Shown here one piece after another: positions 9,384 to 61,669 of a DNA stretch of 64,000 nt. Source of the DNA: Selaginella moellendorffii (Eukaryota > Plantae > Lycopodiophyta); the NCBI RefSeq assembly GCF_000143415.4, contig NW_003314290.1:124001-188000 (forward strand), given 5' to 3'. The notes under the pieces were generated by a model. It had not been told where the DNA came from. It saw only the letters and a program-made list of their open reading frames with translations, and did not search any database. A program made the translations under genes and the position numbers. Each line of letters starts with the position of its first letter. Position 1 is the stretch's first letter.

Positions 9384-11129
9384 ATGGAATCCTTTGGAAA
9401 TAGAAGCTCTAGAACTAGTGCAATGGAAGATCAGATTAGTAGAGTTTTCCTCCGGCGAGGCTCCGCGTTTGATGCATGGCTCACAGCCACTACTGTGCAA
9501 GTAAATGCTTCTCTACAGCACATTTTAGTTTGTAGATTTGGAATTTTCTTCACTCTTGTAGGTAGCGCAAGTTCTTCTTACACTCCCACACTCTTTTGCT
9601 CAAATGGGGCTGGCATCAGGAGTGGTATTTCAGCTTTTATATGGTGCTCTTGGATGTTGGAGCTGCTATATGACTACATCCCTGTATGCTGATTATATTT
9701 GGATATTAGACTCGCAAAAATTGCGAAAAGAAAATCATATTATTCAGGTCTGAAAAGGAATGAATTTCTCATAAGATCTTCTATGAACAAATGCTTTGGT
9801 GGCAGTGGTATGAAGTTTTGGAAGCCCTTTTGGGTCGATGGTGGAAAGCACTTGGTTTGCTATTCAACTGCATGCTGATGTTGAGTGCTGCAACAATTCA
9901 GTTGGTAGCTTGTGGGAAGTGAGTATTTTAATAAGGATCTTGTATAATTCTTAAAATTGGACTACAGCACTGTATGGTACATAAATGACAACCTTGATAA
10001 AAGGACTTGGACATATATTTTTGGAGCTATATGTTTCTCTACATTATTCATTCGAATGGCTCGCAATTATCACCTTTGGATGTTCTTAGGTGTTTTTATG
10101 ACAAGTTACACTGCTTGGTACATGACAATTGCTGCACTATTTTTTGAGAAGGTAGGAGATTCTGAAAATTAAACTCTGGAATATATAATGTTTGCTTTGC
10201 AGCATCAGAATGCTGTACATACAGGCCCAACAAGCTCAGTTGAGTACTTCACAGGAACTACAAATATTATATACACATTTGGCAGTCATGCTCTAACCCT
10301 GTAAGCATCAATAAAATCATATTTCCAAAGCATTTGTACTTAGGCCTTATACTTTCACTGAAGGGAGATAATAGAAGCTATGGATCAGCCAAGAAAATTC
10401 AAGTTTGTTTATGTTTATGCCATTCTCTATATTCTCACACTTACATTACCATCAGCAATAAGTGTATATTGGAGGTTTGGAGATAAAATGCTTGAACATC
10501 CAAATGCTCTTGCCGTTTTTTCTCCATCTAAATTTAAGACTATAGCAGTAATTCTCATGCTAGCTCATCAGGTCAAAATGTTTATTCATAAGTTTACATT
10601 GTAATTCACAAACTTTTATTGTGCAGATAATTGAGTTTGCAGCATTTATAGTTCCCGTTTTTGCAATGTGGGAAAAGATGCTAGGCATTCATCACTCCAA
10701 TAACCAAACTATAAAATATCTTGCAAGGATACCAATTGTGCTTATAATATGTTTATTTGCACTTATGCTACCATTTTTTGGATCGATAAACTCAGTTGTG
10801 GGATCTTTCCTCTCCAGTATAGCAGTTTATATTCTTCCTTGTGTTGCATTTATGGTTATTAGACGACATGAAGAATCAAGAGAGGTAATTAAAACAATTT
10901 TTATAAGCAAATAAGTTAACTACTAAATAAATTTCAGAATGCTATAGAACAACCTCCAGTTTGGATTTTTAATAGTTGGGTGGGAGTTTACTGCATTAAT
11001 CTTGGGATTGTCCTATGGGTGGCAATTGTAGGTATGGGTTTTGGTGCATGGGCAAGCATGTATAGTTTATTTCACAAAGTTGAGCGCTTTGGATTGTTTT
11101 CTAAATGCTTTGAATGTAATAAACTTTAA
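9384..11129 (+). CDS. AUX1/LAX-like transporter, copy A (intact, divergent); exons 9384-9500, 9562-9747, 9806-9918, 9968-10151, 10203-10300, 10364-10571, 10627-10884, 10938-11129
   Basis: DAW..QVAQVLLTLP, NHIIQWYEVL, YINDNLDKRTWTYIFGA, YFTGTTNIIYTFGSHA, PFFGSINS, FGLFSKCFEC. The frame is intact across 8 exons. Confidence 0.9.
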
Positions 11130-13372
11130 AATATTAACTTTAAAATTATAATTTTTTGGAATTTTTTGCTAAATAAACAAGGGTTAGTGATAATCATCAG
11201 ATATCGAAAGTCTTACTATTCTATGAAAAAAAAACCTTCTAGAAAGTGGTAGATTAAAACACTTATCACCTGACACAAAGAAGGCATAAAGATGTTTCTA
11301 AAGCCACTTATGATTAAATTCATTTAGATTATATGATATTTTAAAAATAAAAGAACATGAATTAATAAGATAAAAAAAAATTGGTTTCTATTTAAATGTT
11401 AAATTCTAAACATTTATTCTGATTTGGACCATTGCTCGTGCATGGTAAGAAAAAAAATCCATTCTCTTGTTCGCCAGTTCCATGTGCTTGATCACGAATT
11501 TTTATGATGTCTCTAGTAGAAAAATCGTAATTTTCACTTGGAGGACTTTTACCGTTGTGACGAATCGTAAAAGCTCTGTTCCAATCCAAGCCATGAGAAA
11601 AGTCCGTGAGAAAAGAAACGATGCTTACCTCCAAGCTCCAAAATCAACACACTCCATCCTTGAAAACATGGAATCGACTTGCGTCTCGGCAAACCACGAC
11701 TCGGTGCTCGATCTGCAAATCCATCAAATATGTTGCCAGTTTGTGCCCAGGGTCAAGCCGAAGAATCAATCTTGTTGTTTTTGGGTCAGCATTGTTAGAA
11801 CTCCATCATCATCGTCACCATGAAAATGACAGGCTCGTCCTCGAGATCCACGCTTGAAGAGATGGACCAGGAAGTCCCTGGCACGTGGTCCATGCAGTCA
11901 CGTCACACGCTCACACTTGCAATCTAATATCGCGTGGAAGCATCATCGATCGTCGAAGGAATGAGAGATGAGAGTGATGCCTAATCTTAACTTGCAAAAA
12001 TATAGTTGTTTTGTGCTTATGAAATTCTTCCAATGCTTCAGCTTGAATCTGCTTTGGCATTTGCTTCTTGTAGTCCAAATCAGAGGCTACAAGAGGCAAA
12101 TTAAGCACCACTTGGGTTTACTTGGATTAACACGTTCCCAATGAATTAAAGTTAGTAGAAATTTTGCTAGACTCTATTGATGAACTAAATCATTCACCAT
12201 TTTGGTCACTATTGATCTGCGTTTATTAGGATACCAATCAAGGATAAACTATCTTACTCAACTAGATCCAAAACAACAGTTGCTGGAAAAGAAAAACCAT
12301 TGCCAAATGAACTCTCTAAGACTTAAATAATTATATGCTATAATTCATAAATTTCTATCAATTTTTTCTTTTCATTTGTTTTGTAGAAATTGCCCAGAAA
12401 ATACAGGTTTTTTTTTTTAAGACTTCTACCTTTCGCACTCAATCACCAACTCCCTTGCACAGTTGAGTAGTGCCATAGTCTGCTCCTCAAGCAAGTAAGC
12501 TAACAATGGATTCAGCTTGGCTCCCCTGTCCATGATGATATGCCCCTCCATATGAACATCCTCAGCCTTCGGACTAAGCTGGAACAATCCAAAAGTAAGC
12601 CAAAAAAGCACACCAATAACTTACATCCTCACTCCACCCTATAATCAATCTGTGCCTCCTAGTATACTCTTAGAATTGGTAGAGGGCTGAAGGCATTTTG
12701 CATTACATTGCTGAAATCGTTGAAAGATCATCTTACAGTCCATTACTCTTCCTCCTTGGGAGAAGAGTATCCACATATCAGCTGCCACCGTTCTCGATGC
12801 CTTGCTGAATAGTACTCTATCCTACAGAGAACAAAGTTCCTTTCAAAGTTAGATATGAAACAAAATGACCAAAGCAAGGCAGTATGAAGAAGACATTTAT
12901 TTATAATACATTATTACTTATGGCTAGATTTGATGTAATTTGATCATGAGCCTTGGGAACCACTAGTGACGCAAGTTCCAGCGATCGTCCACACAGGTTC
13001 AAACGTAAGATATTTTCTTGATTGTTCCTTTTTTTTCCTTTTTTTTTTTTTTTTTGCTAAGCTCGTTCTTGTGCTATCCAGGGCGAAGCATTTTGCACAT
13101 ATGTCTCTGCTTACTTGGATCTGTCAAATTTTGCTTACAAAAAATCTGTCGACTATTCTGGTTCACATCAATAAGTAACAGGATCTTTGCATTAGGTTAT
13201 AAAGAAGAAATGCTTAGTGTGAAGAAATCTTTTGACACCAAGAAATGTAGATTATCTTCTCAATTCAGGCAAGAAAATGTCGAATTACTCTCAGTGAAGA
13301 AGTGTCTTTGATTCCAAACATCTTGGAAGAGTATGTTCCCTCTCTACTTTGTTGGAGAGGGTTTCTTCTTGG

Positions 13373-15271
13373 TCACTGTTGGGTCCTGGCCAACTTCCAA
13401 GCGTCAACGCAAAGTCCCTGTCCCCCGGTCGCCGACAGCAGCGACCGCCAGTCCACAATGTCGGGGACGTACGGCATGGCCGAGACCAAGCTCCGCGCGT
13501 CGTCCGCGTGGCCGCCCCGCCCCAGCAAGCTCACCACGCACTGGAAATGCTGCTTGCTGGGGGCCATCCCAAAATCCAACCCCATGGATCGAAAGTAGTG
13601 GCAGCCCTCGCGCAATCTCCCGGCGTGGCTGGATCCCAGCAGCAAGCAATCGAAGGAGATCTCGTCCGCCCCGATCCCCTCGGCTTGCATCCTCTGGAAG
13701 ATCTCCACCGCCTCGCGGGCGGCGCCGCGCTGGGCTTGCGCCGCCAGCGCCACGCCCCACGAGACGCGATTCCTCTCCGGCATGGCGTCGAAGATCGCGG
13801 ACGCGCGGTCGGGGAAGCCGGCGTGGGCATAGGCGGCGGCCATCGCTGTCCAGGAGACGAGATCTCTCTCCGGCATCGCCCACGAGAAGATCTTCGCGGC
13901 GTGATCGAGATCACCCGCCTGGGCGTACGCTGCGAGGAGCGCGTTCCACGAGACGACGTCGTGCTGCGGCATGGAATCGAAGATCCAGCGCGCCTCGTCG
14001 ATGCGGCCCGAGCGCGCGTAGGCGCTGAGCATCGAGTTCCAGGACGAGATGTCGCGGTGGAGCATCGATTGGAAGACGCGCTCGCCGTGATCGAGCGCGC
14101 TTGCTGCCATGATCGCGTTGGAGAGGCGGAGATCGAGGTCGCTCACGCGCTTGGAAACGATCCTGGCGTGATCAAGCTCGCCTCTGTGCGCTAGCGCCAC
14201 GACCAGCGCTGTCCAGGAGACTAGATCCCACTCGGGCATTCGCGAGAGAAGGAGCTCCACACTCTCTACATCTCCTTCCTGGGCATTTGCCGCAAGCATG
14301 GTGTTCCAAGCCACGCGATTCCTCTCTGGCATCTCTTCAAAGATCTCTTTAGCTTGGTTGATCCTCCCCAGCTGTGAGTAGCATGCCAACATCGCCGTCC
14401 AGGAAACGATGCTTCGATCTGGCATACTGTCAAATATTTTCTGAGCTTGTAGCAAATGCCCGTTCTGAGCAAATGCTACAATCATCGCTGTCAGCGCGAC
14501 TAGATCCCTGTAGAGCATCGATCGAAAGATAGAAATCGCTTCTTCGAGGAATCCCTTCTGAGAGAAGATGACAATCATCGCGGTCGACGCTACCATGTTC
14601 CACTCCGGCATGGAATCAAACGCGCGCTTGGCGCTGTCTAGATGCCCGTTATCGGCAAATCCCACCAGAAGCGTCGTCCACGCCACCAGATCGTGCAGCG
14701 GCATCTCCAGGAACAGCGCCATCGCGCCCTCCAAATCCACGGCGTCAACGCACGCAACCAGCATAGCGCTCCAGGAAACGAGGCTCGGATCCGGCATCGC
14801 GCGGAAGATCGCAGCGGCGAGGCGCGTCTCGCCGATCTGCGCGTAGGCGGACAGCATCGCCGTCCAGGAGATCGTGTTCCTGGCCGGCATCGCGTCGAAG
14901 ATCCTCTGCGCGTCGCCGATCCGGCCGATCCGTGCGTATGAGGCGAGCATCGCGTTCCAGGAGGCCAGGTTCTTGTCGGGGATGCGATCGAAGAGGGCGA
15001 TGGCGTCGTCGATCTGGTCGTTGCGGGCGTAGGCGGTGAGCAAGAGATTGTAGGAGAAGACGTTCTTCACGTCCAGGGCGTCGAAGACGCGGCGGGAGTG
15101 GGCGGTGCTGCCACACCGGCCATACATCTGGATGAGGAGATTGGAGAGGAAGAGGCCCGAATCGATCATGCGCGGGCTGCGCGCCACTCGCGCGTGGATG
15201 ATCTTGGCATCCGGAAGTGTCGTGCACGAGGATATGAGATCTACGCATTCCCCCCGGCTCAACTCTTTCAT
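13373..15271 (-). CDS. PLS-class PPR protein (632 aa, tandem short motifs, truncated E domain, no DYW)
   Basis: Intronless ORF with many FDxMPxxxxVSWxAML motifs, then SHAGRLREG...QHFQCVVSLLGRGG...MPYVPDIVDWRSLLSA. Confidence 0.92.
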   Translation of the reverse strand: MKELSRGECVDLISSCTTLPDAKIIHARVARSPRMIDSGLFLSNLLIQMYGRCGSTAHSRRVFDALDVKNVFSYNLLLTAYARNDQIDDAIALFDRIPDKNLASWNAMLASYARIGRIGDAQRIFDAMPARNTISWTAMLSAYAQIGETRLAAAIFRAMPDPSLVSWSAMLVACVDAVDLEGAMALFLEMPLHDLVAWTTLLVGFADNGHLDSAKRAFDSMPEWNMVASTAMIVIFSQKGFLEEAISIFRSMLYRDLVALTAMIVAFAQNGHLLQAQKIFDSMPDRSIVSWTAMLACYSQLGRINQAKEIFEEMPERNRVAWNTMLAANAQEGDVESVELLLSRMPEWDLVSWTALVVALAHRGELDHARIVSKRVSDLDLRLSNAIMAASALDHGERVFQSMLHRDISSWNSMLSAYARSGRIDEARWIFDSMPQHDVVSWNALLAAYAQAGDLDHAAKIFSWAMPERDLVSWTAMAAAYAHAGFPDRASAIFDAMPERNRVSWGVALAAQAQRGAAREAVEIFQRMQAEGIGADEISFDCLLLGSSHAGRLREGCHYFRSMGLDFGMAPSKQHFQCVVSLLGRGGHADDARSLVSAMPYVPDIVDWRSLLSATGGQGLCVDAWKLARTQQ

Positions 15272-23224: not shown

Positions 23225-26046
23225 ATGCCGACGGTGAGCGTCGCCAGGGAGTTGCTCCATACGATGCTGGGGAGGGTTTACAGTAAGAAAATTCTGATGT
23301 GCGCATCAGCGCTCTGATGTTCGCCTGGCAGCGCAAGAGGAATTCGACGAGCTGTGCTTCGTGATTGGAATCGAGCTGGACGATGTGGTGAGTGTGAAAT
23401 TCGCTACATTGCCGCTGCTTGATGACTCTGGCCTTTTTCCAGACGACAGAGAAAGCTATAATCAGGAAAGAGAAGCATTTGCAGGAGAATGAAGCGGACG
23501 AGGACGAAGAGGTTATCTACAAGATCGAGGTTCCTGCAAACCGGTATGGAAACTCTCCTGCATTTGTTCTGGAAAATCTTTCTTCCTTCTGTATTGAAGC
23601 TTTTTCTTTGTTTCCAGATATGATCTCCTTTGTCCGGAGGGGATTTGTCGGCAATTGCGAATCTTCTTGCGGGTCGAGAAAATGCCAACTTACAGACTTT
23701 CGAGACTTCCCGACTCCTCAATCCTGAAGATGATCGTGAAACCAGAGGTAGTATTAATTTTATTTGGTCTTTTGTTGAAGTTTTCTTCCTGGTTGTTTAG
23801 ACTGCAGTGATCAGGCCGTTTGTAGTTTGCGCCATTCTCAGGGGTATCACTTTCGATCAAGCACGCTACGCCAGTTTCATCGACCTCCAAGACAGACTCC
23901 ATCAAAATATTTGCAGGTAATTTTCGTAAACGTGAAGCATATGTTCCACTCGATATTATTTTTAAGGAAGAGAACCTTGGTTGCAATTGGAACTCATGAT
24001 CTGGACACACTACAGGGACCTTTCACTTACGAAGTTCGTTCGTTTTTAAAACTGTTGGAAACCTTTATTCTTACTTCTAAATATTCATTCACTTTGCAGG
24101 CTCTTCCTCCATCAGAAATAAAGTTCATCCCATTAAAGCAGGTACCGAATTCAATTCATGGGGCGTAACTTTGTCTTGCTTTTTTGGTGGCAGGCACAAG
24201 AGTTTACAGCAAAAGAATTGATGGAGTTTTACAAGGTAGCCGTGTGTCTACAATGTGTTTGCGAATCAGCTTTTCTAACACTGTGGTCTTAACAGTCGGA
24301 TTTGAAGCTAAAGAAATTTCTCCACATTATAGAGGACTCGCCGGTCTTCCCTGTGATATACGACAGCAACAGGTAAAACTCAACTCATCGTTCATTAACT
24401 CTCATCTTTCGTTCGTTCTTTTCTTTTCGTTATTAATCACCAGGACAGTTCTTTCGCTGCCGCCGATTATAAACGGTGCCCATTCGGCTATCAGCTTGAA
24501 CACCAAGAACGTTCTCATAGAATGTACCGCCACGGATTTAACCAAGGCTAAAATCGTATTAAACACGATGGTAAGTGCTGCTTTTACAACTTGGAGTTAC
24601 TGAGATTTGCCAGCAGGTTGCAATGTTTTCCGGGTACTGCGATGAGAAATTCGAAGTTGAACCGGTCGATGTGGTGGATCCAGTTGGAAGAGTCACGAGA
24701 TATCCTGATCTTTCCTTGCGCACCATGGACGTAGATTTATCATACATTAAGAAATCCGTTGGAGTACCACTTCAAGCTGGAGAGGTAATGTATCTTCTTT
24801 CCTTAATCTGCGTCCTTTACTATAAAACGTTTTGACTCTTCCAGATTGTGGATCTGCTGAGCAAAATGCAATTGACGTCTAAGGAGATAGATGGGGACAA
24901 AATCCAAGTGTCTATACCGCCAACAAGAAGTGATATTCTGCATCCTTGCGATGTAATGGAGGTACTGTCTTTGTTTCATCCGTCTCAAAGCTCAATCTTT
25001 CGGCTATAGGACGTTGCTGTTGCGTATGGCTTTAACAACATTCCAAAGACTAGACCAAAAACCAGCACTGAAGGGAGGCAGCAACCCCTTAACGAGTTCA
25101 GTGACTTGCTAAGACTTGAGGTATTTTGGTCGACTTGAGAAATCGAAAGCAACTCAATTTGTGGCCTTGTTTCGCAGCTGGCAATGGCCGGGTTCAGCGA
25201 AGTCCTTAACTGGGTCCTAGTGTCCAAGAAGGAAAACTTTACGTTGTTGAACAGGAAGGATGACGACAAGATTGCTGCAATAGTTAGCAATCCTCGAAGC
25301 AGCGACTTTGAGGTGGGTATAAAGAGCCCTTTGTTTCACTGTTTCGTTAATTCTCTGGCTTTTCAGGTTCTGCGGACGAGTCTTCTGCCTGGTATTCTAA
25401 AAGTCATGGAACACAGCAAAGATGTTCCTCGTCCAGTGAAGGTATTGATCAAGATACTATCATCTCTTCGAACTTTTCTTCGTCTCCCCGCGCTTGCTTG
25501 CCCCGCTTTGATCCATCGCATCGGTTTTTCTCTAAATTCGTCCTATCTTTATGCAGGTTTTCGAGATCTCTGACGTAGTTCTCCTGGATCCCAGTAAGGA
25601 TGTAGGAGCTGCAAATTCCCGTCATCTGGCTGCTTTGTACTGCAGCACCACGTCTGGCTTCGAAGTAAGCTAATGTTGTCTGTAGAACAAATGGAATGAC
25701 CAAGCCTGCCTTGCAGATCATACACGGCCTCCTGGATAGAATCATGAACGTTCTCAATGTTCCAGTCGACGGCTACACCGTGGGGCCATCCAATGTAAGG
25801 AAAAGTTCTTATCGTTTGTAATGTAATACTAAGCTCGTTTCGCTGCAGGAACCGGAGCTTTTCAAGGGTCGTCAAGCCAAGATTTTCTACAAAGGCTCCT
25901 GCGTTGGATCCTTTGGAATTATCCATCCTCAGGTACGTAACCTCGTCATGTGGTCTCTCTTAAGCTCCGCTCTGCAGGTGCTCAAGAACTTCGACATTCC
26001 GGATCCTTGTTCTTACATTGAGATGGAAATCGAACGCTTTTTGTAG
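23225..26046 (+). CDS. Phenylalanine--tRNA ligase beta subunit, cytosolic; about 19 exons
   Basis: MPTVSV...[115 protein letters not shown] introns of ~45-115 nt. Confidence 0.93.
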
Positions 26047-28249: not shown

Positions 28250-30014
28250 ATGGAATCCTTCTGCAAGGATGAGTCTACAGTAGGAATTGAAATGCAAATT
28301 ACAAATGTCGAAGAGAGTAACAATTTCACAGCTGGAAGAAGCATCCAAGAGAAAATTACTGGAGCTTTCCTTGTAGGAGGTTCTTCATTTGATGCATGGC
28401 TCACTACAACCACAGCACAGGTAGCCTTCTCTAGAATTATATTCGAAATCTATGGAGAAATTTACCTTGCAGGTAGCACAAGTTCTCCTCACTCTTCCAC
28501 ACACTCTTGCACAAATGGGAATTACATCCGGAATAGGATTTCAACTTCTATATGGTGCTCTTGGTTGTTGGAGCTGCTATATAACTATGTGCCTGTATAT
28601 GGATTATGTGGCAATTCTTGAAAGGCACAACGCTCGTAGGAAGAATCACATAATTCAGGTAACAAAACTAAAAACTTCTTCTGGTGTCGCCTGAAAAAAA
28701 AATAAAAAAAATTGATGATAGTGGTATGAAGTATTAGATGGTCATTTGGGTCGATGGTGGAGAGCATCTGGATTGTTATTCAATTGTGCATTGATGGTGA
28801 GCAGTGCAACAATTCAACTTATAGCTTGTGCAAAGTAAGTTACATATAGAAAACAAAAATCTCTAAAATTTTGGTGGACAGCACAATCTGGTACATGAAT
28901 AATAGCCTTGACAAAAGGACTTGGACATATATATTTGGAGCTTTATGTTTTCTCACTGTACTTATTCCCACAGCAAGGAATTATAGACTTTGGGTGTTTA
29001 TTGGCATATTCATGACAACCTATACAGCTTGGTATTTCACCATTGCATCTATATTTTTTGAAAAGGTATGTCCTAGCTTTATCAATATTTTAAATTTAGT
29101 AACTTTCACAGCATGATAAGCATGTGCAACACTCAGGTCCAGTAAGTAAAATCCAGTATTTTACAGGTGCTACAAATAATATTTATACATTTGGTAATCA
29201 TGCTTTGACACTGTAAGTTAAAATATGATCTGCTTTACTGCTATTAACGTCAGCTTTCAGAGAAATTGTTGAAGCTATGGATAAACCAAGGAAGTATAAG
29301 ATAACTAATGTGTATGCAATCCTTTATATCTTCACACTTACACTCCCATCAGCAGTGAGTGTGTATTGGAGATTTGGTGATCAGATGCTGAATTATCCAA
29401 ATGCCCTAGCAGTGCTCTCCCCATCCAAGTTCAGAAATGTAGCTATCATCCTTATGCTTACCCATCAGGTGGACTTAAACTCTCAATGATAATTTCAACG
29501 TTTAATTTTTAATTTTTTCTGCAGTTTATTGAGTTTGCTGCATTTGTGGTTCCAGTATTTGCAATGTGGGAGAAATTACTAGGCATCCACTGCTCCCAAA
29601 ACTACATCTTAAAATGTATAGCCAGAATGCCAATTGTGTTGGGCATTTGTTTTCTAGCTATTATGCTCCCATTCTTTGGTTCCATCAACTCAGTGGTGGG
29701 CGCTATCATCTCCAGCATTGGTGTCTACATTCTCCCCTGCCTTGCTTTCATGGTCATAAGGAGGCACAAAGAATCAAGAGAGGTATAGGCCACACTTTTC
29801 TTTCAACTATTTTCCATATCACAACATTTTTATTTCAGAATGCGGTAGAGCAGCCACCCTTTTGGATCAAGAGCTGGGTGGGTGTTTACTGCATCAATCT
29901 TGGATTGGTTCTTTGGGTTGGAATCATAGGCGCTTCGGTTCCTGGGCAAGCATGCACAATCTAATGCACAAAGTGGAAAAATTTGGACTGTTTGCAAAAT
30001 GTTTCCAATGTTAA
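28250..30014 (+). pseudogene. AUX1/LAX-like copy B; 8 exons, with a 4-nt deletion in the last exon (~29932) giving a premature stop at 29964
   Basis: Closely similar to copy D. ggaatcataggc[atag]gcttcgg deletion relative to D; the original FGLFAKCFQC* (to 30014) is now out of frame. Confidence 0.82.
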
Positions 30015-30059
30015 GAACTTAACTCATTAGTGTGAAAAACTTACTATACAATACCTTTT

Positions 30060-33140: not shown

Positions 33141-33149
33141 GATATTAAC

Positions 33150-46400: not shown

Positions 46401-47356
46401 TTGGTCACTACACCAAATGACTACTCCTCTTCCTTTCCACAGTCTGGGCCTTTGGGACAACATTTCGGAACACCGTGGCCTTACGCAAGCCTCGTGGGTA
46501 CTCTCCCCGCCTTCCACCTTTGGGTGCTCTAGCCATGGGCTTAGAGCGAGGTTCCGTTGAGCCATGCCTGGTATCCAAGTAGGTAGTGCCACCCACACTT
46601 GGATTGGGAGCATCGGCCAGTCGATCTCCCGGGGGAACTAGAGCCGGCTCTTGAACACTTCACCAAGCTACCCCGCTTGTTAGTCTGTATTCACTCTAAT
46701 CTTGGACTTCCCAATGGGCAGCTCATCACCCAACATAGGGTACAGCCTTTCTGGGCTAAACTGGCCTTTCCTGGCCAAACTGGCTCCACTGCAATCCTCC
46801 CCCTTACTATACTTTTGGAGCTCACCAAACCCCCCAGGGTCTGGGAGATGAACACTTTGGGCTTTCACCCTTTTAGACTTGAACTCGAACTCGAACTCGG
46901 ACTCGGACTCAGGCTCGGCCTCGGCCTCGGTCTTGGCCTCAGCCTCGGTCTCGGTCTCGGTCCCGATCTCGGTCTCGGTCTCAGTCTCGGTCTTGGTCTC
47001 GGTCTCAGTCCTGATCTCGGTCTCGACCTCAGACTCCATCTCGGGTCCTTCTCGGACTCCATCTCGGATTCCATCTCGGACTTTGTCTTAGTCCATCTCG
47101 GACTCCGTCTCGGTCCATCTCGGACACTTCCACGTGTCATGTGTTGGTCCTTTTGGGTCCCTTTTTAGAGCCTTGCTTATTGCTCACTTCATGCTCATTC
47201 CTCGAGCACTTTGTTGGGAGTTCCACTCCCGCTCTCAACCTTTCAAGGCGGAGCTTTTAGTTTAAACGTGTTACGCTCGTTTGGCTTTCGCTTCGGCCAC
47301 TACCATGTGGCGCCCTTCCGGCTCCACTTTGGGGCCTGGGGATTTTGTGTCTCACA
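40432..47356 (-). mobile_element. Family-B LTR element, copy B2 (5' LTR 45877-47356, PBS 45862-45873, PPT ~41818-41833, truncated 3' LTR 40432-41817)
   Basis: Highly similar LTR pair (near-identical ORF translations at 40.5-41.8 kb and 46.1-47.3 kb); gctccgatacca PBS; ~4-kb internal region with no intact gag/pol. Confidence 0.85.
41286..41585. repeat. Hexamer microsatellite (GACTCG/GTCTCG)n inside the family-B LTR; paralogous tracts at ~46875-47120 and ~62680-62925
   Basis: Source of the SD/ES/GL low-complexity ORFs in the track. Confidence 0.85.
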
Positions 47357-48365
47357 CAGAGACCAAGACCAAGTATGAATCCGAGACCAAGATCGAGTTC
47401 GAGTCCAAAGCGATCAACCCCTGAGGGGTGTTCAGGGGGTTCCAAAAGTAGGGAGAGTGTGGGGGTTGGACCCTAGTGGAGCTAATTTGGCCTAGGAAAG
47501 CCATACTCAGCTGTTGGGTGATGGGATGACCACTGGGAAGGCTAGAGTGAATACAAACCAACAAACGGGATAGCTTGGTGAAGTGTTCAAGAATCGGCTT
47601 TAGTTCCTTCAGGAGATCGAATGGTCGATGCTCCCAATCCAAGTATGGGTAGCACTACCTACTTGGATACCTGGCATGGCTCAACAAAACCTTGCTCTAA
47701 GCCCATGGCTAGAGCACCCAAAGGCGAAAGGCAGGAAGAGTACCCATGAGGCCTGCATAGGGCCACGGTGTTCCGAAATGTTATCCCCAAGTCCCGGACT
47801 ATGGAAAGGAAGAAGAATAGTCCTCTGGTGTGGTGACCAAGGAAATAGTCACATAGTGAGGAAGTCCTAAAGGATAGTGGGATTTAATGGTCGGGCTTGT
47901 GGGCCTTGATCCAGAGGTAGTGTTGGCGAACACGGCTACGGACAGAAAGGGACTTGGTGGGGATTGTAAAAGGGATATTGAGGAAGACTGTACCCTATGT
48001 CTGCAGGCATCCTAAGGATGCTAAAGAGTGGATTTGGGGTGATCACTCATGGACGGATGACCCAGTCTTTGAGAGACGGGACTGTGATGCAGGTGGTGTT
48101 GGACCACCGGTGTGACCAAAGTGAATAGGCATGGTCTTAGCGTAATAGGCTGATATGTCGGTGGTATCTTGGGGTATCGATCATGGGATCAAACACGTGG
48201 AGCACTTGGACCAAGTGCAAAGGTTGAGTGGCATGGATGCAATTCTCGGGGCTAGCAAACCCCAAGTCCTGAATTGAATTTATGGAGGTTGTGAATGAAA
48301 CTCCTCCAAGTGGTCAGAGGTATAGTTAAGTGACTAAAGTAGAATGGAAAAATTAATCACTTACA
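47357..48365 (+). mobile_element. 5'-truncated family-B LTR (solo-type), abutting B2 back-to-back
   Basis: Ends ...gtagaatggaaaaattaatcacttaca like the B1 LTR; no PBS follows. Confidence 0.8.
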
Positions 48366-49650
48366 ATTGGGTAAAATAATGCTGTAGCACATGAATGTAC
48401 TTCAAAATCCACCCCTATGAAAGAGTGTTTCCACTTTTGCAAGATAAATCATGGCAAGAAATTCTTTATTATAAACTGAGTAATGAGATTCTGCACTTGA
48501 AAATTTATAGCTTTCAAAAGCGATTACATGATTGTCTTACATAAGTATAACACTGATTCTGGCATAATCACTATGAAAATAAAAGTTGTCATCATTGCCA
48601 TCTTAAGTTGTGCAAAGCTAGAAGCTGCTGCTTCATTCCACTAAAAAAGAGCATTCTTATAAAGTAAATTACTCAAGGAAGATGCTATCACAGAAAAATA
48701 CTTGATAAGCTTGCAATAGAATACTACAAGACCCAAAAACGAGTGGACTTCATGTGGATTGTGAAGATTTTGCCACATCCTTATTGCCTTGACCTTGTGA
48801 GCATTCCCCTAGAGGTCAGCACATGCCCAAGATACTCAATATAATCTTGAAAGAAGAAACTCTTCTTTGGATTCAAATAGAACTTATTTTTCTTGAGCAA
48901 GTTAAGCACATTATATGCCAATTGAACATGTTCTTCTTCAATCTTAGTGTAGATGAGTATATCATCCAAGTATACAAACTCCTTTTTGCAAATGATTTTG
49001 AAATAAATTGTTTATAGCTGCCATAAATGTTCCAGGAGCATTAGTGAGTCCAACGGGCATGACCAAATATTCATAGTGGCCAAAAGCAATCTAAAATGCT
49101 ATCTTAAATTCATCTCTTGCCTTAATTCAAACTTGGTGATAGCCACTCTTAAGATAAATCTTAGAAAAGTAACATGCACCTTGAAGACAATCTAAAAGAT
49201 TGTCAATATGTGGTGAAGGATAAGAATTCTTCACAGTCATTTTATTGAGAGCTCGATAGCTAACACAAAGTTGCATGGAGCCATCCTTTTTCATGACCAG
49301 CAGTTCTAAAGCTCCAAAAAGACTTTGACTTGGCTGAATATAACCTTTCGCTTGTAGGTCTTTTAGCTGATGTTCTTTAGTTGTAAGTGATTTTGCATGA
49401 GAAACTTGATAGAGAGCTCTAGACATTGGTTGTAAGCTTAGTTCAAGCTCAATAGCATGATCTACCATTTGTTGTGGTGGTAGATCTGAACTTGATTCTT
49501 GCTATAAGTAATCTTCATATTCTCGTAAAGGAAAAGATATTGGAAACAATGGACTTTCCTTTACTAGTGCTTTAATCTTTATTGCAAAAAGCACAATACC
49601 TTTCCTAAACTTGTGTAGCTGTGATAAGTGGAGTCAAAAGCAAATTGTGT
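48366..49650 (-). mobile_element. Ty3/Gypsy pol relic (RT and RNase H)
   Basis: VDHAIEL...[87 protein letters not shown]...YSVYNKEFLA; multiple stops. Confidence 0.9.
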
Positions 49651-50107: not shown

Positions 50108-50881
50108 TACACACACACACACAGATATATATACATATATATATATATACATATACATATATACATATACACAAGGTAAAAGTAAAAGTAAAAGGCTTTG
50201 GAAGCAAACACTAAATTATGTATATGTATTCCTATATACATACATATATATACATACATACATACATACATATACATACATACATACATATACATACATA
50301 CATACATACATATACATATATATACATACATACATACATATACATACATATACATACATACACACATATACATACATACACACATACATACACACACATA
50401 CACACATATACATACATACACACATACACACATACATACATACACACATACATATACATACATACATACATACATACATACATACATACATACATACACA
50501 CATACATATACATACATACACATACATACATATATACATATACATACATATACATACATATATACATATATATATACAGATATACATATATATATACATA
50601 TATACAGATATACATACATATATACAGATATATATACATATATATACAGATACATATATACAGATATATACATATACATATATACATATATATATATATA
50701 CATATACATATACATATACATATATATACATATACATATACATACATATACATATACATATACATATATATACATATACATATACATATACATAGATATA
50801 CATATACATACATATACATATACATAGATATACATAGATATACATATACATAGATATACATATACATATACATAGATATAC

Positions 50882-50913
<32 letters not shown>

Positions 50914-51136
50914 ATGTATGTATGTATGTATGTATATATATGTATATGTATGTATGTATGTATATATATGTATATGTATGTATGTATATGTATATGTATA
51001 TGTATATATATATGTATATATATATGTATGTATATGTATATGTATGTATATATATATATATGTATGTATATATATATGTATGTGTATATATATATGTATA
51101 TGTGTATATATATATATATATGTATGTATATATATA

Positions 51137-51185
<49 letters not shown>

Positions 51186-51496
51186 GTATATGTATATATG
51201 TATATGTATATATGTATATGTATATGTATATATATATGTATATATGTATATGTATATGTATATATATATGTATATATGTATATGTATATATATATGTATA
51301 TATGTATATGTATATATATATGTATATATGTATATGTATATATATATGTATATATGTATATGTATATATATATGTATATATGTATATATATATGTATATG
51401 TATATATGTATATATGTATATATGTATATGTATATGTATATATGTATATGTATATATGTATATATATGTATATGTATATGTATATATGTATATATG

Positions 51497-51527
<31 letters not shown>

Positions 51528-51624
51528 GTATATGTATATGTATATATATATGTATGTATATATATATATATGTATGTATATATATATATATATGTATATA
51601 TATATGTATATGTATATATATATA
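50108..51624. repeat. Compound (TA)/(TACA)/(TATG) microsatellite, ~1.5 kb, strand-inverted at ~50906
   Basis: Left arm TACA/TA, right arm TATG/TA, junction tacatgta. Confidence 0.95.
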
Positions 51625-53287: not shown

Positions 53288-54556
53288 ATGGAATCCTTTT
53301 GCAAGGACGAGTATAACGTAGGAACAACTACAAGTAGCATCCATGAGCAAATTACCAGAGTTCACTTTGAAGGAGGTTCTTCATTTGATGCATGGCACCG
53401 CAGGCAGCTCTCACTACAAATTTTTCAAATTTTAGAAAGAATCATTAATCCAAACGTTTCTCCTTTTCCTCGTCCAAAATTTATCGAAAGAAGGATTTAT
53501 CCCTTACAAATTGTGTGCAGATTTTCACACTCTGGCAAAAATGGGACCTACATCTGGAATAATATATAAACTTTTTTATGGTGCGTTTGGCTGCTATATA
53601 ACTATGTGCTTGTACATGGACTATGTGCAAATTCTTGAAAGACACAATTCTCGTAGGAAAAATCACATTATTCAAGTAGAAAAGCAAGAAAGAAATTATT
53701 TCGATAGCTTTAAAATATGATAGGTATGAAGTTTTAGATGGTCTTCTAGGACGGTGGTGGAGAGCAGCTGGTTTGTTATTAACTGTGCCTTGATGGTGAG
53801 CACCTCAACAATTCAACTCATAGCTTGTGGGAAGCAGGTAATCCAGAACAGCATCATCTGGTACATAAATAGGACATATGTATTTGGGGCTCTTTGTTTT
53901 TCAGCAATACTTATTCCAACAGCACAGAATTATAGACTTCGGGTGTTTTCCGGAATGTTTATGACAAGCTATACAGCTTGGTATTTGACTATTGCATCTA
54001 TATTCTTTGAAAAGGTACGCCTAAGTTCATTGCTATTTTGAGTTTAGAAACTTTCACAGAATGTACAACACTCAGCACTATTATCTATGCATTTGGTATT
54101 CATGCTTTAACATTATAAGAAAAATACTTTAAGTTTGTTTCTTCCTCGACAAAGCTATAACCTACAGAGAAATTGTTGAAGCTATGGATAAACCAAGAAA
54201 GGACAAGACAATCTATGTCTATGCAATCCATATCTTCACACTTACACTCCCATCTGCAGTAAGTGTGTATTGGAGATTTGGTGATCAAATGTTCTTTCCC
54301 ATCAGGTGGACTTAAAAACTTCATGATAATCTATTTTGCTTTCTTTTTTCAGTTCAGGTAGGCACACTTTTCTTTCAAGTATCTTCCATATCATAACATT
54401 TTCATTTCAAATAGAGCAGCCACCCTTTTGGATCAAGAGCTGGGTGGGTGTTTACTGCATCAACCTTGGATTGGTTGGAATCATAGGCATAGGCTTTGGT
54501 TCCTGATGCACAAGGTGCAAAAATTTAAATTGTTTGCCAAATGTTTCCAATGTTAA
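53288..54556 (+). pseudogene. AUX1/LAX-like copy C, heavily deleted pseudogene
   Basis: MESFCKDE...GGSSFDAW, RKNHIIQ, YTAWYLTIASIFFEK. Deletions remove most of exon 7; frameshifts are present. Confidence 0.88.
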
Positions 54557-54571
54557 CTCAATAACCTGCCA

Positions 54572-57199
54572 TTAACGTGAAGAAAAACCATTAGCTTCCA
54601 TAGCCAAAAGCATCCTGGATTGATCCTCCCACAAGCCCAAGCTCTCGTACAAGCTCGCCATGAGCACATACGCCGCCGCCAGCCCTCGATCCAAAGCCAT
54701 CACCCTCTCAAACGCGAGCACTGCAAGCTCCACATTCTTCCACTTGCAACACGCGGCCAGCAAGCTCGTCCAAGTCTCCACGCCGGCCTCGAAAGGCATG
54801 GTTTCCGCGACGAGCATCGCCTCCTCAAGCTCGTTCGCGCGTCCCAGAAGATCAACCATGCAGTGGTAGTGCTCAATCCTGGCCACCACCTCGCCGGAGC
54901 TACAACTCGCCGCTACCATTCCCTGGAAGATCTCTCTCCCAGCGTCCACCAGCCCAGCCCGGCCGCAAGCGCTCAGGATGGCGAGAAAGGTGACACCGTC
55001 TGGAGGGCGAGATCTGGAAGAGGCCATCTCCCGGAAGAGCTCCAGCGCCAGCTTCGTCTCTCCCTCGCGGCTATACCCTGCTATGAGCGCCGTCCATGCC
55101 ACCGAGTCCGTGCCTCTCGCCTCGGCCGAGTCGAAGACGCGACGAGCAGCGTCCGTGCTGCCACACTTGCCGTAGAAATCCACCAGTCCTGTTACGACGA
55201 GAGCCTCCGAGTCGAGTCCGGCCTTACAAGCGCTCGCGTGGACGGCCTTCCCGGCTTGCAAGTCCGCCGCGTTGCCGCAAGCTTTGAGAACCGCTACCAG
55301 AGTCCGGCAGTCGGGCCTGGAGCCATACCCGGCCTCCTGCGAGTCGATCATCCTCACGAAGACCTCGTACGCGGCTCTCTCCTGGCCGTTGTCCGTGTAG
55401 CCGAGGATGAGCGAGTTCCATGACACTGAGCTGTGAACCGGCATCCCGTCGAAGACCATCCGAGCGTCGCTCATGCTGCCGCACTTGCCGTATAAGTCCA
55501 CCAGGCTGCTGCTCACGAACAGGTCCTTGTCGAATCCAGTCTTGGCAACGGCAGCGTGGAGAGCCATGCACCTCTCCAGTCCAGCCAGCTTCTTCGCGTC
55601 GGCTCGAGTGTTGAGTGCCTCGACGCTGCTTTCACTCGCTGCCGCCACCAAGCCCGTGCAAGCCTTGAGAGCAGCAACGAACGTCCGGGAGTCTGGAGAT
55701 ATTTCCTGCTCTGTGATCATCCGTTCGAAAAGGTGGAGAGCTTGTTCGGCTTGTCCGTTCTCTGCGTATCCCAGTATCAGCGTGTTCCAGAGCACTAGAC
55801 CGCGCTGCTGCTGCTTCACGCCGTCGAAAACTCTGTACGCAGCATCCATGCAGCCGCACTTGGAGTACATTTCCACCAGCGAGCTGCAAACGAAGCTGTC
55901 CGACTCGCACTTGTGCTTGATGACTTGAGAGTGAATAGCCATTCCCTTGTCCAGAGCTGCCTGCTTTGACGCTCCGTGCTTGGCGCCTTGTTCTTCACTC
56001 GCTAAAGTAGAGCAGGCCTTGAGCAGTGCCACGAAGGTCCGAGCGTCTGGTTGACAACGCGCCTCCGCTTGCATGGCCGAGAAGAGACGAAGAACTTCAT
56101 AGCTGGAGCTCACGGACTTCGACTCAGCATATCCCAGCAATAAAATGTTCCAGGAGACCACGTCGTGCTGCTCCGTGCGGTCGAAGACACCGTGAGCTTC
56201 CACCATTCTTCCGCACTTCACGTACAGATCGACGAGAGTGTTGGCCACAAAGATGTTGGAGTCCCAGCCGTGAAGACACGCTCGAGCATGAATCGCCATG
56301 CCCCTCTCGAGAGCAAGAAAGCTGTTTTTCCTGGCCAGCTCCATGTCGTTTACTGAGACCTTGGTCGCTTCCTCTCTACTCGCGGCTGCAATCCCAGCAC
56401 AGGCCTTCAATGCAGCGACGAAACTTCGATGGTCACACTCGCAGTCGGAGGAGGTGACCATCGTCACAAACAGCTGCAGTGCTTCCTCGAGGTCTTCTCG
56501 GTGCTCGGCGTACCCGGATATGAGGCAGTTCCACGAAACAGCATCGCGGAAGGCCATTCCATCGAAGATCTTCCTCGCTTCCGCCATGTTCCCGCACTTG
56601 GAGTACATGTCAAGGAGCGTGTTGGCGACGAAGATGTCGGTGTCAAATCCCCCGCTTGCAGCCCGTGCATGAACTTTCATCCCTCTCTTCAAGGCCCTGA
56701 CTTTCACCATCCTGTTGCTGCTGCCAACTTGCGTTGCTTCTTCGTTCGCAGCCAAGGTCGAGCAGGCCTTCACGGCAGCGACAAATGTTCTCGAGTTTGG
56801 CTCACAGCCCGAGGCTTGCATTTGCTGAAGCAAATCCAGAGCCACGTCGCCTTCGCCATTGTCAGCATGTCCCAGGACGAGGACATTCCAGAGGACGACG
56901 TCGGGGTGGTGGACTTTGTCGAAAGCCGTACGGGCGTCTGCCGTGCTGCCGCACTTGGCATACATTTCCACCAGCTTGCTGGCCACGAATATGTTGGTGT
57001 CGGCCCCTGCTTTGCTTGCCTCGGAGTGGATTCTTCTGCCTCGTTCTAGGTCTTTTGTGCTCGTGCATGCCTTCAAGGTGTTGAGTAGCAGCGGGATATT
57101 TGTCGGCAATTTCTTCTGTCTCCCTCTAGACCTTTCAATTCCCCCCTCTTCTCGATTCGAGTGAGGGCGACAAGTCTGAGGCTCATCCAGAAGAGCCAT
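54572..57199 (-). CDS. PLS-E class PPR protein (875 aa) with long insertions in its L motifs
   Basis: P-L-S triplets (MYSKCG...VSWN...PDxRTFVAALKAC), then EHYHCMVDLLGRA...TWTSLLAAC...AAYVLMASLY. Confidence 0.93.
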   Translation of the reverse strand: MALLDEPQTCRPHSNREEGGIERSRGRQKKLPTNIPLLLNTLKACTSTKDLERGRRIHSEASKAGADTNIFVASKLVEMYAKCGSTADARTAFDKVHHPDVVLWNVLVLGHADNGEGDVALDLLQQMQASGCEPNSRTFVAAVKACSTLAANEEATQVGSSNRMVKVRALKRGMKVHARAASGGFDTDIFVANTLLDMYSKCGNMAEARKIFDGMAFRDAVSWNCLISGYAEHREDLEEALQLFVTMVTSSDCECDHRSFVAALKACAGIAAASREEATKVSVNDMELARKNSFLALERGMAIHARACLHGWDSNIFVANTLVDLYVKCGRMVEAHGVFDRTEQHDVVSWNILLLGYAESKSVSSSYEVLRLFSAMQAEARCQPDARTFVALLKACSTLASEEQGAKHGASKQAALDKGMAIHSQVIKHKCESDSFVCSSLVEMYSKCGCMDAAYRVFDGVKQQQRGLVLWNTLILGYAENGQAEQALHLFERMITEQEISPDSRTFVAALKACTGLVAAASESSVEALNTRADAKKLAGLERCMALHAAVAKTGFDKDLFVSSSLVDLYGKCGSMSDARMVFDGMPVHSSVSWNSLILGYTDNGQERAAYEVFVRMIDSQEAGYGSRPDCRTLVAVLKACGNAADLQAGKAVHASACKAGLDSEALVVTGLVDFYGKCGSTDAARRVFDSAEARGTDSVAWTALIAGYSREGETKLALELFREMASSRSRPPDGVTFLAILSACGRAGLVDAGREIFQGMVAASCSSGEVVARIEHYHCMVDLLGRANELEEAMLVAETMPFEAGVETWTSLLAACCKWKNVELAVLAFERVMALDRGLAAAYVLMASLYESLGLWEDQSRMLLAMEANGFSSR

Positions 57200-57272
57200 G
57201 GCTATGGCGCCTCATGTGATTTCAGCAGGCGATTGGTCGTAAGAAAGTCAGTCAAAATCGTTTTCACAAATC

Positions 57273-58375
57273 TTACTTCTGTGCTAGAAAGCACTCCAGC
57301 TGCTTGATAATTGCTCTGAAACAGAACCAGTATTGCTCCTGCAATGGACAGAATATCATTTAGACAAAAGGGAAAAAAAGAGAGTAAAAAACCAAGGGCT
57401 TGGCTTACGCTCGTCTCGACTAATCCACCTCGCTGCTGTCGGAGGTACTGAACTACATCAGCAACACTCACGGCACTCAGGTCTCCACTTTGAATCCTTC
57501 TTAAAATATGGTCAATGGTAATAAAAGTTCCCGAACGACCGATTCCAGCCCTGGCATGCAAGCAGACTTAGATTCCAAGGAACACGGGCCAAGAAAAGAA
57601 AGAAAAAAAGATAAACAAGGAAGAAAGGAAGAAGATAAAGCACGAACCTGCAGTGAACGACATATGAGCATCCAGGTTGAAGCTTGTAGAGCTCCTTGAA
57701 AATTTCGAGGACGGGCTCTACCAACCTTGGGACTCCAAAGTCCGTCCACGAGTATTGAAAGTGCTCAACGCCAAAGGCCTCATGGCCGGGGGATTCCACT
57801 TCCAAAACACGCTTGGAAACTCCAAACCGACTGTGCTGCAAGCTCTTGTTCGTCACTCTGATATCTCCAAAGTTCTCGAATTCTCCTGGCCTTGATGGAA
57901 AGTAATCAGCGTAGCATTCCTACAAAACCAAAAAATAAAATAAAAAAATCGAGTAATACTCCCTCGAGCAATCGAGCAAGACACTCACAGCAGTAAGTTT
58001 GACGATTGCTCGACAGCGCTGCTGCACGATCATCTCCCAGAAACGATCTGGCGCGTCGGGATTTCCAGCGCAGATCGCCGTCGGCCCCCCGGACAGAGCC
58101 TTGTGCCGGATGAAATTCGCATTGACGAAACCGGTGGTGTCGCGGACGCCGTGAAGCTCTACCCGCGTCGCTGCCTTACAATACGGATGATCCCCTAAGT
58201 TCTGGAGCAGCTCCTTGGCCTCGATAATCCTGAGATCGTCTAGAACAAGAGATTCAGCGCTCGATTCACAATCCAAAAGAGATCACTCACTGTATTCTGC
58301 GATTGCCTGATCATGCGTCTTCGTCTTGAGCGCATCCAGCGCCTGGCGGCACCACTCGAGCTGCGCCTCCTCCAT
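57273..58375 (-). CDS. Classical protein tyrosine phosphatase (PTP1-like), divergent; 5 exons
   Basis: Spliced product contains FVNANFI, FWEMIVQQ, IVKLT, WTDFGVP, VVHCR|AGIGRSG, LRQQRGGLVET and EQYWFCF. ATG at 58375, stop at 57273-57275. Confidence 0.85.
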
Positions 58376-59450: not shown

Positions 59451-59917
59451 AAAGGTGCGAAAGAAAAAGATGAAAAAGACGTTTAGCCACGATTTGTTCA
59501 GTGGCTTTTATTTCTCATTTTGATCTTCTTTTTCAGCTTCGTGGAATTCTCTAAGCCTCACGGGAAAGCCCTCCTCGCATTGGTAATTGGGTGAAATACC
59601 AACAACGCGCTTGATGAGAGGAGCCATATCATGTAACGAGCATACACTACCACCACCACCTTTGCCAAGAAGGAAACCAACCGACCTCCGACATGTGAAA
59701 TGGTGATCTACTTCCAACCTCTTCCTTGCATCCGCGTTGCTACCATAACACTCAAGATCATTGATCCTAGACAGCAAATCGCCTGCCATTGCCCAGACAG
59801 AAAAACCCTAAAGTTAAGGAAATGCCCGGGAAGACTTTCATTTCCAAAGGACTTGCTGTTTCGCAGGACTTGTAATTTGTCTTTATTGACTATAGGTTGC
59901 TCTTCTGTTTGCAAATC

Positions 59918-61669
59918 ATGGAATCCTTCTGCAAGGACGAGTCTAGGGTAGGCATTGAAATGCAAATTACGAATGTTGAAGAGAGTAACAATTTCACAGC
60001 TGCAAGAAGCATCCAAAAGAAAATTGGAGCTTTCCTTGTAGGAGGTTCTTCATTTGACGCTTGGCTCACTACAACCACAGCACAGGTAAAACTTCTCTAG
60101 AATTATATTCAGAAATACTCATTTACCCTTATGCAGGTAGCACAAGTTCTCCTCACTCTTCCACACACTATTGCACAAATGGGAATTACATCTGGAATAG
60201 GATTTCAACTTCTATACGGTGCTCTTGGTTGTTGGAGCTGTTATATAACTATGTGCCTGTATATGGATTATGTGAAAATTCTTGAAAGGCACAACGCTCG
60301 TAGGAAGAGTCACATAATTCAGGTAACGAAACTCTAAACTTCTGATGTCGCCTGAAAAAAAAAAAAACAAAAATTGATGATAGTGGTATGAAGTATTAAA
60401 TGGTCTTTTGGGTCGATGGTGGAGAGCACCTGGATTGCTATTCAATTGTGCATTGCTGGTGAGCACTGCAACAATTCAACTCATAGCTTGTGCAAAGTAA
60501 GTTACATATAGAAAACAAAAATCACTAACATTCCAGTGGACAGCACAATCTGGTACATGAATAATAGCCTTGACAAAAGGACTTGGACCTATATATTTGG
60601 AGCTCTTTGTTTTCTCACAGTACTTATTCCCACAGCACGGAATTATAGACTTTGGGTGTTTTTTGGCATATTCATGACAACCTATACAGCTTGGTATTTC
60701 ACTATTGCATCTATATTTTTTGAAAAGGTATGTCTCAGCTTTATCAATATTTTAAATTTGATAACTTTCACAGCATGATAAGCATGTGCAACACTCAGCT
60801 CCAGGAAGTACAATTCAATATTTTTCAGGTGCTACAAATATTCTATTTACATTTGGTAACCATGCTTTGACACTGTAAGTTCAATATGATCTACTTTACT
60901 GCTATTAAGTTTCAGCTTTCAGAGAGATTGCTGAAGCTATGGATACACCAAGAAAATACAAGACAACCAATGTGTATGCAATCCTTTATACCTTCACACT
61001 TACACTCCCATCTGCAGTGAGTGTGTATTGGAGATTTGGTGATCAAATGCTAGATCATCCAAATGCCCTAGCAGTGTTTTCCCCATCCAAGTTCAAAAAT
61101 GTAGCTATCATCCTTATGCTTACCCATCAGGTGAACTTAAAATCTCAATGATAATCTTAACATTTAATCTTTTATTTTCTTGCAGTTCATTGAGTTTGCT
61201 GCACTTGTGGTTCCAGTATTTGCAATGTGGGAGAAATTACTAGGCATCCACTGCTCCCAAAACTACACCTTAAAGTGTGTAGCCAGGATGCCAATTGTGT
61301 TGGGCATTTGTTTTCTTGCTATTATGCTTCCATTCTTTGGTTCTATCAACTCAGTGGTGGGTGCTACGCTCTCCAGCATTGGCATATATATTCTCCCATG
61401 CCTTGCTTTCATGGTAATAAGGCAGCACAAAGAATCAAGAGAGGTACAAGCCACACTTTTCTGTCCATATCAAAAAATTTTGATTTCAGAATGCAGTAGA
61501 GCAACCACCGTTTTGGATCAAGAGTTGGGTGGGTGTTTATTGCATCAACCTTGGATTGGTTATTTGGGTTGGAATCATAGGCATAGGCTTTGGTTCCTGG
61601 GCAAGCATGCACAATCTAATGCAGAAGGTAGAAAAATTTGGATGGTTTGCAAAATGTTTCCAGTGTTAA
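59918..61669 (+). CDS. AUX1/LAX-like copy D (intact, divergent); exons 59918-60085, 60137-60322, 60384-60496, 60544-60727, 60774-60874, 60923-61130, 61186-61443, 61490-61669
   Basis: Full frame through 8 exons, ending FGWFAKCFQC*. Confidence 0.9.

Follow-up and report, generated by a model that had tools for sequence, protein, structure and literature searches.

We analysed a 64,000-nucleotide stretch of the Selaginella moellendorffii genome (contig NW_003314290.1, positions 124,001 to 188,000; hereafter, the window) that carries four homologues of the AUX1/LAX auxin importers. Canonical AUX1/LAX proteins are proton-coupled importers of indole-3-acetic acid (IAA) as well as of 2,4-dichlorophenoxyacetic acid (2,4-D), and are inhibited by 1- and 2-naphthoxyacetic acid (1-NOA/2-NOA). 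Using tblastn with two queries, a canonical AUX/LAX protein and a local gene model, we located the homologues on the + strand at 9.4-11.1, 28.25-30.0, 53.3-54.6 and 59.9-61.7 kb (copies A, B, C and D; Table 1). Enumeration of GT..AG pairs between in-frame anchors gave spliced models of A, B and D with 8 exons each, GT-AG at every junction and introns of 46-63 bp. A preliminary description of the window had reported four 8-exon paralogues, with A and D intact, B frameshifted at its C-terminus and C dead; we found the copies in the same places and the same states, with 8 exons modelled for A, B and D. NCBI labels these proteins 'auxin transporter-like protein'.

The annotated model of D, SELMODRAFT_175182, begins at an internal Met; an upstream MESF start is common to A, B, C and D. 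The model of B (P0002) is 100% identical to B across the exons that it covers. The duplicated block shared by B and D consists of the gene only (28221-30057 vs 59889-61712, 90.6% identity), and alignment to D places a small deletion in exon 8 of B. At this lesion the window reads GGC followed directly by GCTTCGG, where the other haplotype has GGCGCAGGCTTCGG, and the resulting frameshift removes the end of transmembrane helix (TM) 11 and the C-terminal KCFQC. The allelic locus, L001 (GL377571.1), matches the window at 96-97% around B, and its allele of B, SELMODRAFT_84463 (Sm84463), has an intact 466-aa open reading frame (ORF) with the exon structure of B; 18 of the 1392 coding bases compared differ, and the ratio of nonsynonymous to synonymous substitution rates (dN/dS) is 0.215. 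Since this allele is intact, the lesion in B is a recent haplotype-specific null allele, or possibly an assembly error. In copy C, deletions have removed parts of exons 1, 2 and 5, exon 6 at its 3' end, the greater part of exon 7 and the DKRTW motif, and the copy also carries frameshifts; on L001 it is likewise broken, with stops and the identical DKRTW deletion.

Purifying selection acts on A, B and D (dN/dS 0.11-0.21). By the Nei-Gojobori method (NG86), dN/dS is 0.124 between A and D (dS 1.55, near saturation), 0.113 between A and B, and 0.19 between B and D (dS 0.20). We compared four sequencing runs with positions 8900-11700; in two of them, X1 and X3, which are contigs from two different studies, the contigs skip all seven introns of A at the modelled positions. 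Both runs are therefore RNA assemblies, and A is transcribed and correctly spliced. Sampled 31-mers of D are present in the same spliced assemblies (53% in X1 and 41% in X3, against a ceiling of ~0.67 for a fully spliced mRNA), which indicates that D is transcribed too. In the raw RNA-seq runs X23 and X24, of each of which ~12% was read, there are no reads of A despite abundant reads of its upstream neighbour; hence, expression of A is restricted by tissue or condition.

Fold and pocket residues of the copies

We modelled A with AlphaFold2 from an alignment of 47 sequences. The model has a mean predicted local distance difference test score (pLDDT) of 90.6 and a predicted template-modelling score (pTM) of 0.89, and it matches the LeuT-APC fold of AAAP/Aa_trans proteins, which is defined by 10+1 helices with broken TM1 and TM6. 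Its top matches in the PDB are the LAX3 structures 9h61 and 9h63 (TM-score 0.88-0.97, root-mean-square deviation (rmsd) 1.7-1.8 Å, 51% identity), followed by AUX1, with SLC38A9, AdiC and LeuT matching far less well. The Pfam domain Aa_trans (PF01490) is recorded for A (P0152), B (P0002) and P0151. Compared with AUX1 and LAX3 as a set (9jdr, 9lva, 9h61 and 9h63), the copies share the 11-helix LeuT/APC fold (TM-score 0.88-0.97, 49-51% identity), H249, H321, Q62, Q153, Y244, the gate residue Q59, E254, P332, DKRTW and the C-terminal CxxC; they differ in having a shorter N-terminus, in lacking a tail after CxxC and in falling outside the canonical clade. A shares the positions and phases (0,0,2,0,2,0,0) of all its seven introns with Sm112710 (locus L002), a canonical Selaginella gene, so the duplication took place at the DNA level.

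The motifs quoted in the preliminary description are all present in the copies, while their canonical versions are invariant in 21 canonical land-plant sequences. The first motif is WLTATTVQ or WLTTTTAQ; the second motif reads NCMLMLSA, NCALMVSS or NCALLVST, the third YTFGSHA, YTFGNHA or FTFGNHA, and the HQ motif HQIIEFAAF, HQFIEFAAF or HQFIEFAAL. Retained motifs are DKRTWTYIFGA and the CxxC, which reads KCFEC in A and KCFQC in D.

Residue numbers are those of AtAUX1 unless LAX3 is named; Y242, F326 and A327 of LAX3 correspond to Y244, F328 and A329 of AUX1. In the IAA-bound structure of AUX1, Y244, Q62 and Q153 bond the carboxylate, N58 and T325 are proposed to form hydrogen bonds with the indole NH, A61, H249 and A329 are in van der Waals contact with IAA, and Q59 is the gate (PMC12337342). 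In LAX3 structures, converted to AUX1 numbering, a hydrophobic ring pocket is formed by F145, L146, V251, F328, A329 and P332, and H249 and H321 lie at Na1- and Na2-like proton sites; in oocytes, IAA uptake is abolished by each of Y242F, F326A, A327F and the histidine mutants of LAX3, and this 2025 work describes the pocket as conserved among plants at every residue (PMC12364708).

When A, B and D are aligned with the 21 canonical sequences, which range from liverworts to angiosperms, Q59, A61, Q62, Q153, H249, E254, H321 and P332 are retained in all three copies, and Y244 is kept in A and B and is F in D and in D's allele. The canonical set of ring-pocket residues is not conserved. N58, T325, F328 and A329 are invariant in the canonical sequences, in which position 145 is occupied by F or, rarely, by Y or M, whereas A, B and D have V or A at 58, L at 145, E at 325 and A at 328, with F (A and B) or L (D) at 329. 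Further changes in the three are F148S, G248S/N, V251L, G327A, T331V and H191R, and G149 is filled in, as are G248 and G327. Each of two other changes is confined to a single copy, R194H to A and Y244F to D. A and B therefore naturally hold the equivalents of LAX3 F326A and A327F, and D those of LAX3 F326A and Y242F, with L at the A327 position.

Mapped on the AUX1 and LAX3 structures, the changed motifs coincide with residues that contact IAA, as the preliminary description had anticipated. Its further suggestion that the copies may couple protons differently gains no direct support, since neither the two histidines nor the ligands of the carboxylate vary and the ring half alone differs. At the level of aligned residues, the half of the site that handles the carboxylate and the proton is untouched, and the ring half is rebuilt.

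A lycophyte clade sister to canonical AUX/LAX proteins

With exon 7 of A as the query, an exhaustive HMMER search yielded only 152 cluster representatives, and full-length relatives came from word-indexed searches with the B model, a clade profile and a moss homologue. In IQ-TREE trees of 47 and 63 rows (LG+C20), A, B and D group with Sm84463, the allele of B, and their sister is Sm100516. Joining next are Sm133400, Sm78094, the very divergent XP_024543525 and ten proteins of Diphasiastrum complanatum, together with XP_024536360 in the 47-row tree. We name this group for the HQxIE motif that it carries in TM8, as the E325 clade; it also shows loss of N58, retention of A61 and monophyly spanning Selaginella and Diphasiastrum. 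The clade comprises 18 rows, all from these two lycophytes, with support of 100/99, and it is sister to the canonical AUX/LAX clade (support also 100/99) rather than nested inside it. The canonical clade contains liverworts, mosses, Selaginella Sm112710 and P0289, Diphasiastrum Dc08G099200, a fern and angiosperms. Chlorophyte homologues (Coccomyxa, Trebouxia and Micractinium) branch beyond a third land-plant clade. The preliminary description had proposed a lineage-specific AUX/LAX subfamily, and the copies do stand outside the canonical LAX clades. The subfamily is not particular to this cluster, with at least 18 members from Selaginella or Diphasiastrum.

In approximately unbiased (AU) tests, for which the groups were named after the tree was seen, a topology with all lycophyte sequences together is rejected (p 0.0135 and p 0.003), and one that places the E325 clade with canonical tracheophytes is weakly rejected (p 0.03). 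The E325 clade evolves ~3x faster than the canonical clade (root-to-tip ~1.7 vs 0.6). In view of this rate and of the post hoc naming of the groups, a rate artefact after a lycophyte-specific duplication could still explain the sister placement, though this is the less likely history.

Fourteen clade members were scored at the pocket positions. H249 and H321, the histidines of the AUX/LAX family in the broad sense, are present in 14/14 as they are in A, B and D. At the carboxylate and proton positions, the sole departure is Y244F, in D and two Diphasiastrum proteins. T325 is replaced in all 14 members (by E in 13 and by V in one), and N58, F328 and A329 are replaced in nearly all, with a hydrophobic pair at 328/329. 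Comparison of all 18 rows gives the same residue pattern, with wider variation at position 325. The other E325 members (SELMODRAFT_100516, 78094 and 133400, XP_024543525 and the ten D. complanatum O6H91 proteins) share with the window copies T325E, loss of N58, F145L/Y and the proton and carboxylate residues. The window copies and Sm84463 form a young sub-branch that is distinguished from them by S57T, F148S, G248S/N, V251L and G327A/S, and by A328 with F or L at 329, where the others are mostly L-L.

At positions 58, 328 and 329, the clade is nearer to algal-type relatives (A/G; L; F/Y) than to canonical proteins. Given the sister placement of the E325 clade, its pocket may never have been canonical, a history that would fit these residues at least as well as remodelling from a canonical pocket. 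The preliminary description had taken the motifs as remodelled.

Outside lycophytes, the clade-profile search found no protein of this type, with only Selaginella and Diphasiastrum proteins outscoring canonical ones. The top Momordica match, Q2UZS5 (P0154) of Momordica charantia, is a canonical AUX/LAX protein of 614 aa in which an internal duplication of ~130 residues inflates the profile score; the duplication looks like a cloning or assembly artefact.

We also note the third land-plant clade of AUX/LAX-like proteins, which has the algal-type G61, lies outside the canonical and E325 pair, and is found in mosses, liverworts, lycophytes and gymnosperms. Its members include P0377 (SELMODRAFT_184022), DcY092600, P0370, P0386, P0050/P0333 of Ceratodon (including M758_1G049300), P0365 of Sphagnum, P0378/P0379 of Calypogeia, P0382 of Ginkgo (Gb_28004) and P0385 of Araucaria; there is no angiosperm member among the 120 matches listed for the moss query. 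The third clade and the chlorophyte homologues share with the copies the family, the fold, H249, H321, Q153, E254, a hydrophobic or aromatic residue at 329 and the lack of N58 and T325. They differ in having G61 and A, G, V or S at 325, and the third clade also lacks A329.

Surroundings of the copies and the second haplotype

Table 1. Features of the window and codons of selected pocket residues
Feature	Position	Strand	Remarks
Heavy-metal P-type ATPase (HMA)	2592-5086	+	HMA and E1-E2 domains
APO RNA-binding protein	6632-7543	+	
Copy A	9384..11129	+	intact, 451 aa; 100% identical to SELMODRAFT_104259 (P0152)
A exons	9384-9500, 9562-9747, 9806-9918, 9968-10151, 10203-10300, 10364-10571, 10627-10884, 10938-11129	+	junction search, assembled coding sequence
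A V38 codon	9495-9497	+	= N58
A H229 codon	10287-10289	+	= H249
A H301 codon	10566-10568	+	= H321
A Glu305 codon	10633..10635	+	= AtAUX1 T325; clade hallmark
A A308/F309 codons	10642-10647	+	= F328/A329
Phenylalanyl-tRNA synthetase beta chain (PheRS-beta)	23827-25573	+	
Copy B	28250..30014	+	frameshifted in exon 8; covered by partial model SELMODRAFT_415922
B exons	28250-28420, 28473-28658, 28722-28834, 28882-29065, 29112-29212, 29261-29468, 29525-29782, 29839 onward	+	
B lesion	29931..29932	+	4-bp deletion in exon 8 (alignment vs D)
B stop, ancestral	30012-30014	+	
B stop, frameshifted ORF	29962-29964	+	
Copy C	53288..54574	+	pseudogene; three-way DNA alignment with B and D
Protein tyrosine phosphatase	57202-58276	-	
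Copy D	59918..61669	+	intact, 465 aa; identical over 451 aa to SELMODRAFT_175182 (P0283)
D exons	59918-60085, 60137-60322, 60384-60496, 60544-60727, 60774-60874, 60923-61130, 61186-61443, 61490-61669	+	
D codon, F at Y244 position	60846-60848	+	
D codon, E at T325 position	61192-61194	+	

We looked around the copies for a biosynthetic cluster and found no enzymes suggesting one, with no dioxygenase or methyltransferase among the neighbours; transposons are present in addition to the genes listed in Table 1. A pentatricopeptide repeat (PPR) gene or fragment lies on the minus strand downstream of A, B and C (13373-15271, 30437-30871 and 54572-57199, respectively), and the PPR fragment at 30398-30749 is 83% identical to 55092-55457. 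Upstream of A, positions 8900-9200 (+) belong to a strongly expressed gene without a Pfam match, which has an intron at 8977-9025 and ends near 9190, ~190 bp 5' of the ATG of A. One X3 RNA contig links the last exon of this gene to the first exon of A, reflecting either read-through or overlapping untranslated regions in a compact genome.

The two haplotypes differ elsewhere in the window. Positions 31100-49050 hold ~18 kb of nested repeats that are present in the window haplotype only, being absent from L001, and positions 50170-51530 hold a 1.4-kb (ATAC)n/(TATATG)n microsatellite that is also absent from L001; across this repeat and microsatellite region, allelic identity is merely 89-97%. 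In exon 7 of A, both RNA assemblies differ from the window at 10720 (C>T, Leu to Phe) and 10734 (A>C, silent), and these differences probably represent the other haplotype's allele of A.

Candidate substrates and implications for the AUX/LAX family

We propose, with moderate confidence, that A, D and, on the other haplotype, B are working genes that most likely encode proton-coupled importers of a carboxylate other than IAA. From the work on AUX1 and LAX3 we infer proton coupling, membrane location and a specificity other than for IAA. The proteins are predicted to be plasma-membrane proton symporters with the LeuT fold that would bind a carboxylate as AUX1 and LAX3 do, using Q59, the A61 backbone, Q62, Q153, Y244 and H249; H321, which occupies the Na2-like site, is retained along with E254 and P332. 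Loss of both hydrogen-bond partners of the indole NH (N58 and T325) would alter the cavity that receives the rest of the substrate. Glu at position 325 is expected one helical turn below H321 on TM8, where it could pair with a group on the substrate or modulate the Na2-like proton site. Around it, the swap of F328/A329 to A/F (A and B) or A/L (D), the shrinking of F145 and F148 to L and S, and the filling in of G248, G327 and G149 would further reshape the cavity. The proteins are thus predicted to import an organic acid that is not IAA.

Several observations weigh against this proposal. Change in the pocket is not in significant excess over that in other canonical-invariant columns (4/12 vs 29-30%, Fisher p ~0.5); indeed, divergence spans the whole protein, beyond the pocket, and general divergence could account for some of the substitutions. 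The side-chain geometry goes beyond the model of A, having been read from the ungapped alignment in TM1, TM3, TM6 and TM8. F328A and A329F co-occur and might compensate for each other, and E325 could itself accept the indole NH bond, keeping IAA as the substrate. D lacks the Tyr244 hydroxyl that LAX3 requires. Lastly, A has no reads in X23 and X24.

An unlikely alternative is that the copies still import IAA or another indolic or aryl acid auxin, with Glu325 replacing N58/T325 as the NH acceptor and the A328/F329 swap preserving cavity volume. The wholly invariant carboxylate and proton half of the site would suit such a role, as would the co-occurrence of N58 loss and E325 gain across the clade, the closeness of the A model to LAX3 (51% identity, rmsd 1.7 Å) and the fact that lycophytes transport and respond to auxin (PMC8521068). 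Nonetheless, Selaginella and Diphasiastrum each retain fully canonical genes (Sm112710 and P0289, and Dc08G099200), and F326A, A327F or Y242F, each as a single change in LAX3, abolishes IAA uptake (PMC12364708). The ring-lining positions 58, 145, 328 and 329 vary among clade members, unlike a site for one ligand, and a buried carboxylate beside an anionic ligand would be unfavourable unless protonated.

We consider it rather improbable that the substrate is zwitterionic or cationic, for example an aromatic amino acid or an acid that bears an amine. In that case the amine would pair with Glu325 and the carboxylate would be held by Q62, Q153, Y244 and H249, a shift back in the direction of amino-acid permeases, as in the AAAP family at large. 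The geometry is questionable for an alpha-amino acid, because position 325 is part of the ring region and is not adjacent to the carboxylate site; in algal-like relatives the residue at this position is A, G, V or S and not an acid. On the other side stand the new acidic residue in the substrate cavity, conserved in 13/14 members, the Pfam Aa_trans domain and the identity of the nearest folds after AUX/LAX, which are the amino-acid transporters SLC38A9 and AdiC.

That the copies are redundant duplicates drifting to loss, with motif changes that reflect decay, is scarcely credible, even with C dead in both haplotypes, B frameshifted in the window haplotype, A without reads in two RNA runs and a clade rate ~3x the canonical one: the 8-exon ORFs of A and D are intact, with dS 1.55 and dN/dS 0.12 between them, A is transcribed and correctly spliced, the allele of B is intact with dN/dS 0.215, and the same substitutions are conserved in Diphasiastrum across a very old split, such that dN/dS and this conservation contradict decay for A and D and leave it to hold only for C and the window-haplotype B. 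For A and D, selection rather than decay had already been argued from the shared motif changes, and the dN/dS of 0.12 and the expression of A bear this out.

We found no description of the E325 clade in a literature search, although an earlier description remains possible; Selaginella AUX/LAX proteins have been used simply as an outgroup or basal group, with the altered pocket unremarked (PMC5927418). AUX/LAX is treated as a uniformly conserved family of auxin importers, and the E325 clade, being both expressed and selectively constrained, is a natural counter-example. The clade retains the coupling machinery yet bears exactly the changes that abolish IAA transport in LAX3, making it a ready-made specificity-swap system. 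Lycophyte 'AUX/LAX' genes should therefore not be counted automatically as auxin carriers.

The clade also bears on when auxin-specific import arose. More tentatively than for the substrate class itself, we suggest that the E325 clade may be an ancient sister of the auxin importers, pre-dating the split of bryophytes and vascular plants and surviving, with expansion, only in lycophytes, where it would carry a non-auxin organic acid. If this is true, the IAA ring pocket of N58, T325, F328 and A329 would be an innovation of the canonical lineage alone, and the variants described here would show how a LeuT-fold carboxylate symporter can be retuned with its proton-coupling core fixed.

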